Counted from the first letter of the stretch, positions 34,994 to 40,900 are shown. The stretch is 64,000 nucleotides of DNA from Blastocladiella emersonii ATCC 22665 (GCA_025594325.1 JANHCV010000010.1:620001-684000), one strand, 5' to 3'. Notes: a model not told the origin generated them from the letters alone. Numbers and translations: made by a program.

Positions 34994-37900
34994 CTACTCG
35001 ATGGCCTGGACCAGCTTGCTCTCGAGCGCGAGCGAGTAAAAGACCGAGTTGGGCCGCGCCAGCAGCGCCGCGGGCGTGTCGAACTCGGCCACCTCGCCGT
35101 GGTCGAGCACCAGGATCTTGTCATAGTCGATGATCGTGCCGATGCTAATACGGAAAAGTCAGTCTTGAGAGGGTGAGTGGGGTAAGGAGGGGAGGGGAGG
35201 GGCGGGGGAAGGAGGGAGGAGAGCGCACCGGTGCGCGATCGTGATCACCGTGCAGCTGTCAAACTCGCGGCGGATCGTCTCCTGGACCAGGTTGTTGGTG
35301 GCCGCGTCGATGCTGCTCGTGGCCTCGTCGAGGACCTGGCGGAAACGAGGGGGCGAAATGAGGTCGAAGGTCAGCAACCTGACCAACCACGCCATCAAGT
35401 GACAAAAGCGTACCAGAACCCGCGTCTTGCGCAGAATCGCGCGCGCGAGACACAGCAGCTGCGACTGCCCGACACTCAGCGTGGACGCCTTGATCGGCGC
35501 GTCGAGCGCCCCAGGCAACGCGGCGATCGCGTCCCGCAAATGCGCGGCGTCGAGGGCGGCCCAGATCTTGGCGTCGGACCGCGACGCGAGCGGGTCGAGG
35601 TTGTCGCGGATGCTCGCCTCCATGAGGTACGCGTCCTGCGGCAGGATCGTCAGCTGCGTGCGCAGGTCGTGCAGGCCGAGCGTTGCAATGTCCAGCCCGT
35701 CGATTGTGATGGTCCCCGACGCGGCTTCCATCAGGCGGAACAGGGTCGCGGTCAGGGAGGATTTGCCGGCGCCCGTGCTACGATTGAGTTCGGGAGGGGG
35801 GTTAGCGCGCGAGCATGACGCGCGGGTGGACAGGAACACGCGTACCGGCCAACGATCCCAATCTTCTTGCCGGCCTCGAACTTGAGCGAGATGTTCTTGA
35901 GGACAAGCGGGAGCCTGGGGCGGTACGCGACCAAGTAGTCCTTGAACACAATCTCGCCGCAGCTGGGCCACGCAGGGTCGAGCGCAAAACTCGTCTCCTT
36001 GGGCGCCCCGCTGGGCAGCGCCGTGTACTTGCGGATCCGCTCGACGCTGATCGCGCTGGCCTCGAGCTGGCCGTACATGCGGATGAGCGTGGAGAGGAGG
36101 TAGACGAGGTTGACCGAGGACAACTTGATCCCACCATGATCCTGACGGGCGAGGGCCACGCCTTTTCCGCCGGTACGCCGCTGCACCCGTTCGGCCGCTG
36201 CACGCAGTGCTGCTGACCGCCGCGCCGCGACACGTAGGCGGCGACCTTGACTCTTTGCAGAAGCGCATCGAGGCGTCCAACCTGACCAACGTACTGACCA
36301 TGCGCGCCTTGCGCATTGTACATGAAGACTGATGATTTAATTATGTTTCTTTTTTTTTCGCGCATTGACGCAGTGGAGATGGGGACCATTCCCGTGGAGA
36401 CAGTGAGAAACAATCAGGCGCAAGTCACGTGATGCTTTGTAACGATCGATTGCTGCTGCGACGTGGCGTCGAACTGCGCTCGCCGCGACGTCTAACCTGC
36501 CTCTTCCCGCACCAACACGAACGCCATGTAACCTCCTGCAATCGCGCCAGAACCCCTGATCGCGCTCTCCCCGCCGCCGACCGCACCAACACCCAGTATC
36601 AAACTCTCCTTCTCTCCCTCCCCGCCGCTCGACTGCGCCGACACACCACCACCACCTTCACCATGCCAACCCACCCGCCGGCCGTCGTCCAAGCCTTCAT
36701 CATGGAGATCCTGGCTTGCCACTCCGGCGCAGCGCAGCCCCCAACAGAGCCCAAGCGGTGGCCCAGCGCATCGACGGTCCTCAGGCTCCTCCATGAGATC
36801 GGTTGCAGACATCACGACATGTCCCGCGTCAAGCTCAACACCGCCGCCACCAAAGACCTCCCGATCCTCGGCGAGGACGTGCCCAAGTGGGTGCCGCCGC
36901 TGCGCAACCCCGCTGTCCCCGCCACCCTCATCAAGTCGCAGCTGCCCGCCAACGAGTTTGCCGGCATCCCCTCGCTTGGCCACCAGGTCCTCACCGAGCT
37001 CCGCTTCATGTTCCTTGTCAAGCTCGTCGAGCACCTCAGCACCTACGCCTCCATCCACGTTGCGTGCAGAAATGCCGCCGGCGAGCTGGTGTGGGTCCGC
37101 ATCACGCTCAACAACATCATCATCAACCAGAACGGCCCGCACGAGTACATTGAGTTCAAGCACTCGCAGCAGTCCTCCTGTTCGTTTCTCGCCACGCCCG
37201 CCCTGCACCTCCCCTCGCGCGTGGGCAAGATGGACAAGAGGGGCAACAAGTTCCTGGCTACGGTGCCTGCCAAGTCTGTTCCGCGCACGGCCTGCAACAT
37301 CAAGGAGCAGCTGTCTTGCAGCAACTACGCCGTGCAGTTCCGCTTTCGATTCGACATGGGCAAGTCGGCGCACGCCGCGCCACCGGCCGACCCCGTCGGC
37401 GCGCTGTCGTTTGCGCATCCTCTCGGCCTTGCGACCGTGGACAAGGTCAACACTACCATCAAGCTGTACGGCTACTGGCTCAGCGACGGCACCATGGACC
37501 GCAGCTCGAAGATCCTGTTCTACCTGACAAAGCCCCAGGACGTCACGTACCTCGACAACCTGTTCAAGCGGCTCAAGCGCGTCCTGCCACCGTCCAACAA
37601 GAACGGCATGACCAAGGTCCTGATGCCTTCGAGTAAGACAGTGTACACGATCAAGAACCAGCAGTGGGTCGAGTACTTTCGCTGTGCCTACCAGCACAAG
37701 TACGTCAAGTTGTTTGGTCACAATACCCAGCAGCTCAAGTACCTGATCAAGCCCAAGAAGCCCGTGCCCATCAACGGCCTCCCGTTCGCCGCCGTCCAGA
37801 TCCCCAACACGCCGTTCCTCACGCTTGAGGCCGAGTTCACGCACTTGGTCAAGTGGTGCCTCGGGTGGGTTGGTTTGGAGCTCAACCCGGACCAGATCAA

Positions 37901-40900
37901 GCTCTTCCTCCAGGGCCTGCGCTTCGCCGACGGCAACGAGTCGCAGGGCACGGCGTGGGGCGGCTCAATCTTCACCTCGTCGGAGCGCTTCTGCGACCAG
38001 GTGGTCCTTCTCGCCATCCTCGCAGGCTACTCGGTCATCGCTGTCCACAGGGTCAATGCCGGTTACTCGACGCCGGCGACCTTGGGCACGACTACTGCTC
38101 ATGGGTGGTCGGTCAACTATGCCACCAGCACCAACGTGACCAACTCCCACGGCACCGCCTCGGCCGACCTGCAGTGCGTGGACGGACCGGCGTGGAGCCT
38201 CATCCTGGACAACCCCAACGCTGTCTTCATGGTGCGCCAGCTGCCCGAGGTCGCCGCCAATGGCGTTGTGCCACACACGGGTCGCCCCGTTCTTGTTTGC
38301 GCGCAACACACATCTCCGGCGACTGGTATTGTTTCTGGCTCAGCTGGTCCCTTGGCTTTCACTCACGCACCCAAGCGTTCCATACAGAGCTCGCTCCCCG
38401 CATTTCTGCCGCCAACCTTCTCGCCACGCTGCCACGCGCTCCCGTCACGTCCCTGCAGCTGCACGACCCAACCAAGACGCTGCAGCCATGCGTGCCTGCC
38501 GTTGCCGCCGAGCCCGTCGCCACCGTACCCGAGATCGCAGCGGTCCCCGTTGCTGCTGTATCTGAGATCGCAGCGGTCCCCGTCGCCGCCAAGACTGAGA
38601 TTGCAGCGGTCCCCGTCGCCGCCAAGACCGAGATCGCGGCGGTCCCTGTTGCCCCGGCGGGGACCAGTTCGCAGGTCCCGCCAACCCGTAAGCGCAGCGC
38701 AACCCAAGCGCCCGCTGCGCCCGCCGCTGCCGCCAAGAAGCCCAAGGTCACGTCGGCATCCTCCTCCTCGTTGGCATCTTCCTTGTCAACCACGGCGCCC
38801 GCGGCTTCGGCAAGTTTGGCCACAACGCCCACGGCTCCTACAAGCTCTGCCGCACCGACAACCTTGGCGGCGATGCCGGCCATGCAGACGATCTCGCGTC
38901 CCTCCGTGTCCGAGGTCAAGACGCTCGGTCACTTCTGGCCCAGTCGCCCAGGCCTGACGTACACCTGGGGGGTGCGTGAACACCATCATGTGACGTACTA
39001 CAGGGTGTACGAGGTCAACAACAGTAGCAACCACGACGGGGGGCCATTGCGGTTTGTGGGCTACTGCAAGTTGCGCCCAAAGGACGGCGTGCGCGACTTC
39101 TGCGGCGTGTAATAGCGACGCATGCCACACGCTCTCTCTCGATTCCCTCGTACCCTTGCACTTGTTTCTGGCGCCCACTCACTGTTCATTGTGAAGGCGA
39201 GCGGGCCACCATTGGGAGGGGTGGGGCCCAATGGAACTAGTTTGAATATATGAGTCTTTATTCCATACAAGAAAGGCATGGCCGCTATTGCACGTAGCCG
39301 ACGTTGAACAGGATCGAGGCAATGCTGACAGCGACCGTGATTCACAAACCAAACCAGAGTAGTTGAGGGCGACGGCCATGGTCGCCAAGTTGCTGCTGGG
39401 CAGGACAACGGCCAGGACCATGATCACGGCGATGATCACGTTGCCGAGCTGCTGCAGCTGCAGGAACAGCCACCGGTTCACCGACACCTGGTTGTAGGTC
39501 CCCGTCGACGACGTGTCAAACTTGGCCTCGGCCGCGCGCAGGAACCGCGCCTCCTCGGCACCGCCAGTCCCGCGGATCACCGACAGCCCCGCGAGCGTCT
39601 CGCTGAAGTGCGTGTACACGGGCGACGCGAGGACCAGCACGATGCGCTGCAGCTCGCGGCTGACGGCAAGGTAGATGCGCTGCAGGAACAGGAAGACGAC
39701 GGCGAGCGGGACCAGGACCACGAGGAACCACGGCGTCGCGATCACAATGGTGCCCACAATGAACGCGCACGAGAAGGCCGTCCAGATAAAGTGGTCGAGC
39801 AGCTCGGGCAGCACCGCGTCGACCTGGTTCTGGTCGCTCGACAGCCGGTTGAGCACGCGGCCCGCGGGCGTCGTGTCGAAGAAGCTCATGGGCGACCGCA
39901 GGATCGCGTGCAGCATGCGGTCCATGGTTGACCGCGCCCCGCGCACCGCTGACACCACCATCGAGTACGCAATTGACACACCATTGATCCCCGCGCCGCC
40001 AAACGTGATGGCCCCGTACACACCAAGGTAGAAGGCCGTGTCGCCGCCCTCGCTGCGCTTCAACGCCTCGCCCCATGCCGCGAGCCAGTACGTCACGCCC
40101 ATGGACACGACGGTCCCGAGCGTCGTCGTCAGCAGAACCACAGCCATGTTGCCTATTCCGCAAGCCTGGAAGTACATCCAGAAGACGCGCCAGTTGACCG
40201 AGCCCGTCGCGGCCGTCTCGGCGTTGTTGTCGCCGTCGTCGCACTGGGTATTGTCCGACAGGAGGTGCTCCGTGTCGGCGTGCAGCTGGTGCTGCAGCTG
40301 CTCGGGCTTGACGTTGGCCTTCTTGGCGGGAACGACAGCGAGCGTCTTGGACGAGTCGTTGACAGAGGACGCCAAACCGCCGCCGCCAGTCGCGGGACTC
40401 GCGTCGTCACCGCCACTGACGCGCTTGGCCTGGTACTCGTTGACCATATTCGCGACGCGCCCGCCGGTGCGCGCCATGAGCTCGGCGTAGGACCCACGCT
40501 CCGTGATCTTGCCGCCCTCAACGAGCACGATTGAGTCGACGGCGGGCTCAGCGAGGTGGTGGATCGCGTGCGTGACAAGGATCACGGTCTTGCCGCGGAG
40601 CAGCCCGTTGCGCTTGTTGAACCACGCGTTGAACATGTGCGTCTCGACGTGCACGTCGACCGCGGCGAACGGCGAGTCCATGATGATCAGGTCCGCGGCG
40701 CCCATGGCGGCCGAGTACAGGGCGCGCGCGCACGAGATGCGGGCTTGTTGGCCGCCGCTGCACTACACGGTTGGCGTTGCGCAAGTCAGAATCCGCTGCT
40801 GATCCCGAAAGCCGAGTGAAAAGAAAACGTACGTTGACACCGCGATCGCCAATCATGGTCTCGTCGCCGTTGGCAAACACCTGGAGGTCCTTGACGAGCG

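Follow-up and report, generated by a model that had tools for sequence, protein, structure and literature searches.

H9P43_007679, a gene of the early-diverging fungus Blastocladiella emersonii ATCC 22665, is best explained as a nuclear gene that stands alone and has at its core an entire splicing-dead intein with its endonuclease centre kept, an account that we consider likely as a whole. Its derivation from an intein and the loss of splicing are close to certain, and its stand-alone condition is very probable. The gene lies in the window analysed here, a stretch of 64,000 nt from contig JANHCV010000010.1 (620001-684000; assembly GCA_025594325.1), and corresponds to the NCBI "hypothetical protein" entry (P0001, 728 amino acids, aa) for the open reading frame (ORF) from 36663. 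An earlier note, made from the DNA alone, had described a free-standing, non-splicing, intein-derived gene, and this description is supported by the sequence family, the predicted fold, a census of residues and the nature of the flanks.

The intein-homologous core and its flanks

The ORF extends on the plus strand from the ATG at 36663 for 554 codons, without stop or frameshift. NCBI places the start at ATG 36819, as opposed to the ATG at 36663 chosen in the earlier note, and the intron donor at 38281 (GTCGCC) instead of 38326 (GTATTG); both donors are in frame with the acceptor at 38387, which is common to the two models, and the stop codon of exon 2 occupies 39110-39112. With values of 0.89 (core), 0.86 (N-terminal extension) and 0.83 (C-terminal domain), the GC content at third codon positions (GC3) comes close to the 0.91-0.92 of the exons of the surrounding ABCC transporter gene, which gives these parts the look of coding sequence that has been in the genome for long. 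The features of the gene are the following.

36663-36962, plus strand: N-terminal extension, 100 codons before block A (from the ORF; GC3 as above)
36963-38306, plus strand: intein-homologous core with Hint-N, DNA-recognition insert, double LAGLIDADG domain and Hint-C (HMMER, alignments, AlphaFold2, Foldseek)
36963-36995, plus strand: block A, Cys1 nucleophile replaced by Gly (family alignment)
37185-37211, plus strand: block B, TPALHLP against TxNHRMW in the family (family alignment)
37461-37493, plus strand: LAGLIDADG motif 1 (ELYGYWLGDG in the family), catalytic Asp retained (alignment; language-model score 0.94)
37902-37937, plus strand: LAGLIDADG motif 2, LQGLRFADG (LxGLRxADG in the family), catalytic Asp retained (alignment)
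37968-38000, plus strand: counterpart of the family motif IYTSSxRFRDE, after LAGLIDADG motif 2
38280-38306, plus strand: block G remnant, GRPVLVCAQ followed by H, against SRPxVVGN followed by Ser, Thr or Cys in the family (family alignment)
38326-38387, plus strand: predicted spliceosomal intron with donor GTATTG, branch-like CTCAC and acceptor ACAG ending at 38387
38388-39112, plus strand: exon 2, with a low-complexity linker, 33-bp repeats, a basic cluster, a 70-aa C-terminal domain and the stop codon (translation)
38684-38746, plus strand: basic cluster TRKRS..KKPK (exon 2 translation)
38900-39109, plus strand: orphan beta-rich C-terminal domain of 70 aa, no relatives

An exhaustive HMMER search against 1.84 billion cluster representatives returned 195 relatives with an E-value of at most 1e-3, of which 61 reach 1e-10 or better (best non-self E 5.6e-35); they span residues ~100-540 of the query. 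The proteins which host these relatives comprise family-B DNA polymerases (polB), RPB2, PRP8, ribonucleotide reductase (RNR), glucan synthase and an ABC-transporter membrane domain, and most of the relatives are found mid-protein. The polymerases account for 8 of the 44 relatives scanned, including those of Pandoravirus dulcis and P. belohorizontensis, while metagenomic loci add phosphatases and a WD40 protein to the list of hosts. A locus search with a six-sequence alignment recovered 34 loci, and at nearly all of them the match is a canonical intein within a long ORF of giant-virus-like or eukaryotic type. Since the relatives are mostly placed mid-way in long host proteins, the family is made up of true inteins, which reside in nuclear genes of eukaryotes and in genes of giant viruses, and the core of H9P43_007679 is, as judged from sequence comparison, a full-length member of this polB/RPB2/PRP8-type family. 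The complete intein layout noticed earlier is thus real and far beyond chance.

Searches of Pfam, NCBIfam, PHROGs and the PDB by sequence, with the protein, its parts and the family profile as queries, gave nothing significant (the best match was LAGLIDADG_3, E 0.26), because the family is too divergent for the models of these curated libraries. Among 5.8 billion proteins searched by word index, no entry other than the query itself came up, and a profile query added one RPB2 intein. Protein-language-model features related the whole protein to the LAGLIDADG_3/Hom_end clusters with scores of 0.78-0.82; residues 255-470 alone reached 0.94 with 182 shared features, and all the named matches listed were LAGLIDADG_3.

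An AlphaFold2 model, built on an 88-sequence alignment (A2) of the relatives, reached a predicted local distance difference test (pLDDT) value of 85 and a predicted template modelling (pTM) score of 0.87, and is uncertain only in an internal loop (model residues 265-292). The model is a Hint fold with a nested LAGLIDADG domain, predicted as a pseudo-dimeric nuclease of alpha-beta-beta-alpha-beta-beta-alpha topology. The comparison with PI-SceI, HO and PI-PfuI suggested in the earlier note was made with Foldseek and gave matches for the Hint part as well as for the LAGLIDADG part. Against the PDB, the model matched TliVMA (4e-10), PI-SceI (1e-8 to 1e-5), PI-PfuI (2e-4) and also PhoVMA, over 420-550 aligned columns, and its nuclease half matched I-DmoI (TM by target 0.55-0.66), followed by WhiA. 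Among the Swiss-Prot models, the top 30 matches out of 30 were inteins, Vma1 included, or HO; residues 2-466 of yeast HO match the model with an E-value of 1.4e-8.

Residues were compared by means of MAFFT and hmmalign, and the census counts refer to the relatives covering the respective ends. In the family, block A is an Asn followed by CFPxxDHEILT; the Blastocladiella protein has Ala before block A and Gly101 in the column of Cys1, which is kept in 44 of 46 relatives. Block B retains its Thr (present in 43/46), but the aligned His (likewise 43/46) is replaced by Leu, with a His one residue further on, and the Cys of block F is replaced by Ser. At the end of the core, a terminal Asn is found in 47 of 55 relatives and a Cys, Ser or Thr at position +1 in 49 of 55, against Ala and Gln/His in H9P43_007679 (LVCAQ followed by H). 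All the canonical splicing positions are therefore substituted, and among the counted residues only the block-B Thr remains, in agreement with the earlier reading, in which the start of block A lacked a Cys, TPAL stood in place of TxxH, and VCAQ/H in place of an Asn followed by Cys, Ser or Thr. As there is no nucleophile at position 1 or +1 and no block-F Cys, the protein is left without any of the mechanisms known for inteins, and from established intein chemistry self-excision should be impossible by any of these routes.

The nuclease centre contrasts with this. Both Asp of the two LAGLIDADG helices, pointed out beforehand as acidic catalytic residues, align with the catalytic columns of the family and are both kept, where among ~140 relatives the first is found in 92 and the second in 108. 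The near-invariant positions of the family are also mostly retained.

The flanks had been called unrecognisable as exteins, and they have neither relatives nor families. The N-terminal 100 aa gave no relatives in the exhaustive HMMER search and no Pfam family, while the tail encoded by exon 2 has no Pfam family, no Atlas neighbour, no homologue and no CxxC; no trace of polB or of any other extein was found in the two flanks (100 aa and ~240 aa) by HMMER and Pfam searches. On this basis the flanks do not appear to be a known host protein, and they may represent an orphan one. The cluster TRKRS..KKPK resembles a nuclear localisation signal (NLS) and may act as one. The linker contains a tandem repeat (38531-38653) of 33 bp in 3.7 copies with 85% matches, encoding 11-aa units. 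An identity of the C-terminal domain as AP2 or zinc finger was considered and rejected, as nothing supports either.

Some further observations regard the family at large. The residue preceding Cys1 is Asn in 33 of 46 members across unrelated hosts (polB, RNR, phosphatase, WD40), a preference of insertion site or of processing. A canonical member (P0033, locus L003 5001-8975) resides in an ABC-transporter membrane domain on a eukaryote-like metagenomic contig, in sense orientation and at a position which differs from that of the ABCC insertion in Blastocladiella. Eight loci (L012, L013, L022, L023, L026, L027, L036 and L037) are very long intron-less ORFs (1,500-2,800 aa; the GC content of the contig is 25-31% for some of them), which carry 2-3 copies or remnants of the intein family each and look like giant-virus multi-intein genes.

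Splicing-dead relatives and known systems

Other members of the family share the condition of H9P43_007679. P0010 and P0138, from two contigs of JGI metagenome 3300046002, start with TGIP and end with LIGK/LFGK; P0034, whose contig in GCA_041447075.1 measures 2.8 kb, has IVGA followed by ASSTSPANS at its end; P0004 and P0007, from Tara Oceans, have their own Met, start with RGFP and end with AGD followed by A. All of them are short ORFs in which the layout is the same, Cys1 and/or the terminal Asn is missing and both Asp are kept, at 26-31% identity to H9P43_007679 (~27% for P0010 and P0138) and without its long C-terminal linker and domain. Further shared features are the GIP start, in P0010, and the SP.T tail after block G, in P0010 and P0034. 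The retention of both Asp across H9P43_007679 and these relatives argues for a continuing DNA-directed function. The P0004/P0007 stand-alone family is a cluster of 28 members with an NLS-like N-terminus, on compact, eukaryote-like contigs from Tara Oceans and marine metagenomes in which synteny with an aldo-keto reductase gene is conserved (L004-L006, L008 and L009).

In a maximum-likelihood tree, H9P43_007679 tentatively groups with P0010 and P0138 (support 84/94), and P0004 and P0007 make up a clade of their own (100/100) that branches from among canonical inteins. In approximately unbiased (AU) tests, a constraint joining H9P43_007679, P0010, P0138 and P0034 fits well (p 0.47), and one joining all six splicing-dead genes is not clearly rejected (p 0.08). 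In our reading, splicing was lost at least twice in this intein family, with the loss in P0004 and P0007 being a separate one. The lineage of H9P43_007679 probably lost splicing before B. emersonii existed, and the escape is probably not specific to the fungus. Of the independent escape in a zoosporic fungus proposed earlier, separation from the VMA1/HO/WHO lineage stands, but its restriction to the fungus probably does not, given that P0010 and P0138 are also splicing-dead.

HO and WHO are made up of a region that resembles an intein, lacking exteins and motif G, joined to a zinc-finger domain with 3-5 CxxC, and descend from the VMA1 intein (PMC7282813). WHO elements adjoin FBA1 on its downstream side, with a replacement 3' half, and are clustered (PMC7282813; bioRxiv 10.64898/2026.08.13.744650). 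Like H9P43_007679, HO of S. cerevisiae (P09932) is a stand-alone nuclear gene which combines a Hint part and a double LAGLIDADG domain without exteins, and in each the C-terminal splicing motif is degenerate and a further region has been added at the C-terminus. However, the two are 11% identical, HO stems from the VMA1 intein and H9P43_007679 from the family marked by CFP, TxNH and VVGN, and only the latter has a 100-aa N-terminal extension. The lack of zinc finger and CxxC repeats means that membership of the HO/WHO family fails, leaving in common only the intein-like part devoid of exteins and motif G, in an HO-like architecture. The WHO genes of Torulaspora and Lachancea share with H9P43_007679 both the origin as an intein-derived LAGLIDADG gene and the presence of a partial copy of another gene alongside, but they have zinc fingers and form clusters beside FBA1, whereas H9P43_007679 is a single gene antisense inside an interrupted ABCC gene. 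Furthermore, ABCC is interrupted and not replaced, and the scrap next to H9P43_007679 derives from an enoyl-CoA hydratase (ECH)-like gene and not from ABCC, unlike the WHO/FBA1 case.

Domain order and fold are held in common with PI-SceI (1VDE/1LWS), TliVMA (7QSU) and PI-PfuI (1DQ3), and the sequence family is shared with Pandoravirus and metagenomic polB, RPB2 and PRP8 inteins. Canonical inteins are embedded in a host protein, while H9P43_007679 is not and has substitutions at Cys1, at the His of block B, at the terminal Asn and at the +1 nucleophile. No match of H9P43_007679 to PI-SceI or HO was found at sequence level, even with the family profile. That H9P43_007679 belongs to another sequence family and resembles HO and PI-SceI by fold only (11-14% identity) indicates that it is independent of the VMA1/HO/WHO lineage. 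Surveys of eukaryotic inteins list Prp8 and RNA-polymerase inteins in Blastocladiomycota (PMC5784728, PMC10710043), and the portions of these two surveys reached by term searches make no mention of free-standing intein-derived endonuclease genes in that phylum.

The insertion in the ABCC gene

H9P43_007679 is antisense to the ABCC gene, within an insertion of 3,226 bp which interrupts it. The elements of this setting are listed below.

36124-39349, plus strand: 3,226-bp insertion splitting an ABCC (MRP/YCF1-type) gene of the minus strand (sequence, ABCC alignments)
39350-40705, minus strand: ABCC exon with the second transmembrane domain (TMD2), ending ...ALNYSGL at the insertion (alignment to ABCC structures)
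35845-36123, minus strand: ABCC exon resuming with LSSVNLVY... and continuing to ...KIGIVGR (alignment to ABCC structures)
36124-36310, plus strand: ECH-like fragment consisting of exon, 63-nt intron (GTACGC..CTGAC..TAG) and exon (Pfam ECH_1/ECH_2)

In comparison with the solved ABCC3 and MRP1 structures, the two ABCC pieces align to ABCC3 up to residue 1232 and from residue 1233, with five extra residues at the joint, and in the downstream exons of the second nucleotide-binding domain (NBD2) Walker A, signature, Walker B and H-loop are intact. NCBI annotates ABCC as two genes, without a spliced model. The insertion is flanked by the triplet CAA on the plus strand (TTG on the minus strand) at 36121-36123 and 39350-39352. 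On the strand that encodes ABCC, its first letters are GTTTGT and its last ATCAAG, so that it is bounded by GT..AG in phase 0; its splice signals (GTTTGT, no CTRAC, AAG) are poor beside those of the three neighbouring ABCC introns (GTRCGC, CTRAC, YAG).

The left 187 bp of the insertion match Pfam ECH_1/ECH_2 with E 0.009-0.014, at profile positions 44-67. A contig of another genomic locus shares only 36256-36310 and diverges after 36310. The idea that the left-end fragment is the 3' end of a gene was discarded, as it is an internal ECH piece and the stop codon lies beyond the point of divergence. The contigs consulted derive from four DNA runs of one sample, probably the source of the assembly, and contigs hide rare alleles; they span both junctions of the insertion at single-copy depth, with no branch or alternative allele, and no empty-site joint of ABCC was seen in them. 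Within the 64-kb window the insertion is not repeated, either whole or in part, and no terminal repeats, inverted ones included, were found at its ends. Foreign DNA captured at a break by end joining would leave such a pattern, which is no proof that the enzyme of H9P43_007679 made the break, nor does it exclude this.

Two observations concern the ABCC gene itself. The region 35000-35750, which covers its last ~750 bp with the NBD2 exons, is represented by short contigs at 2-4 times the single-copy depth with variants, which points to near-identical ABCC paralogues or alleles elsewhere in the genome. At the other end, reading the minus strand from the ABCC exon into the insertion (39179-39349) gives 57 extra codons and then a stop; strong donor-like sites are found here, CA/GTGAGT at the stop and then GG/GTACGA, and thus alternative splicing of ABCC into the insertion is conceivable.

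Weighing of explanations and significance

As a stand-alone gene built on a splicing-dead intein, H9P43_007679 would encode a monomeric, site-specific protein that binds or cleaves DNA in the nucleus. Its dead Hint part would be retained as a module for structure and for contacts with DNA, like that of PI-SceI and HO, and the C-terminal basic cluster and orphan domain would supply nuclear targeting and perhaps DNA specificity. The gene would have arrived within the 3.2-kb piece of DNA, together with the ECH scrap, inserted antisense into the ABCC gene.

Several points weigh against this account. No orthologue of H9P43_007679 was found in any named organism by the HMMER and word-indexed searches. 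Its branch measures 2.9-3.2 substitutions per site, where the median is ~1.1; this makes its position in the tree tentative, and a long branch fits relaxed constraint as well as a new function. After LAGLIDADG motif 2, RFRDE of the family has become RFCDQ, and block F is degenerate (AWSLILD against VWCVxVP). The choice of ATG, the intron and the expression of the gene are predictions. Moreover, the final 15 codons before the intron (38280-38324), which include the VCAQ/H end, have a GC3 of 0.47 against 0.89 in the core, so that the codon bias of the block-G strand resembles that of non-coding DNA. This favours the early donor of NCBI at 38281, while homology and fold favour the later donor at 38326. 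The block-G remnant (38280-38306), with its atypical codon bias, may now be intronic, and its removal by splicing, which the NCBI model implies, would leave the Hint fold without its last strand. We put the odds that H9P43_007679 is still an active nuclease, as predicted, at about even.

The escaped intein could have been domesticated, that is, kept by the host for the cutting or binding of cellular DNA in the manner of HO, its location in ABCC being an accident of rearrangement. We regard this as possible, on the doubtful side. The intact ORF with host-like codon bias, the additions at both termini with their NLS-like cluster and the single-copy state agree with it, and splicing-dead relatives at ~27% identity which keep both Asp suggest long retention after the loss of splicing. 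However, an orthologue is lacking in every named fungus searched, the branch is very long, and the conserved synteny of the marine P0004 group has no counterpart here. The same long branch, together with the loss of all splicing residues, the degenerate block F and the orphan status in databases, would suit a functionless relic, namely a decaying intein copy, derived for instance from an integrated giant-virus gene or from mis-homing, in which stop codons are yet to come; Pandoravirus polB inteins are indeed among the relatives, and the gene is located inside a disrupted gene and beside a gene scrap. We deem it unlikely, as opposed by 554 codons without stop or frameshift, a three-base GC periodicity equal to that of host genes, the retention of both catalytic Asp and of most near-invariant positions, where a third of true inteins lost an Asp, and flanks with no trace of polB or of another extein.

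The earlier note had also proposed the gene as a candidate homing element, mobile as a cassette. In its active form, the enzyme would cut the uninterrupted ABCC site between ...AACTACTCTGGTTTG and TCCTCGGTCAAC..., repair would copy the 3.2-kb cassette in, and the host would tolerate it because the spliceosome would remove it as a GT..AG intron. The insertion does fall exactly between consecutive residues in a conserved region of ABCC, with the flanking exons intact, its GT..AG ends in phase 0 would arise by chance in ~1-2% of cases by rough estimate, and the nuclease Asp are kept. Nevertheless, no positive evidence for mobility emerged: the gene is single-copy in the reads, with junctions crossed by unbranched contigs, no empty site seen and no second copy in the window. 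Furthermore, the splice signals are poor beside those of three neighbouring introns, NCBI offers no spliced ABCC model, and the ECH scrap and the 3-bp junction identity are more typical of end-joining filler capture than of gene conversion. We therefore consider an active homing cassette rather improbable, and mobility by homing in any form, now or in the recent past, unlikely. The most remote of the readings is that of a working intein which splices from a novel host protein, with flanks of 100 aa and 240 aa, by a non-canonical route. Some inteins use a terminal Gln, Gln548 is present, the family member P0093 ends in GQ followed by C, and the Hint fold is full. The absence of a nucleophile at position 1 (Gly) and at +1 (His), whichever end residue is chosen, and the change of the block-F Cys to Ser, which makes the internal-Cys (class 3) route unavailable, reduce its probability to nearly nothing. 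A stand-alone gene with a splicing-dead intein as its core remains our preferred explanation.

In the literature searched, HO and WHO of budding yeasts are the only described free nuclear endonuclease genes that escaped from inteins. H9P43_007679 would be a second, independent case, in an early-diverging fungus, from another intein lineage and with another tail, and the metagenomic relatives, from two or more other lineages, point to a repeated escape of inteins in eukaryotes. The gene is also a candidate new meganuclease, whose target would be long.

Were the ABCC insertion indeed spliced, homing nucleases would be linked to intron gain. The full version of this idea, a new nuclear homing element in which a LAGLIDADG enzyme of intein origin is directed at a conserved site of ABCC and its gene rides antisense in DNA removed by the spliceosome, is in our view very improbable; if true, a protein-splicing parasite would have traded protein splicing for spliceosomal RNA splicing, a way in which new spliceosomal introns could arise. 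More broadly, H9P43_007679 offers a test case for the domestication of selfish nucleases.

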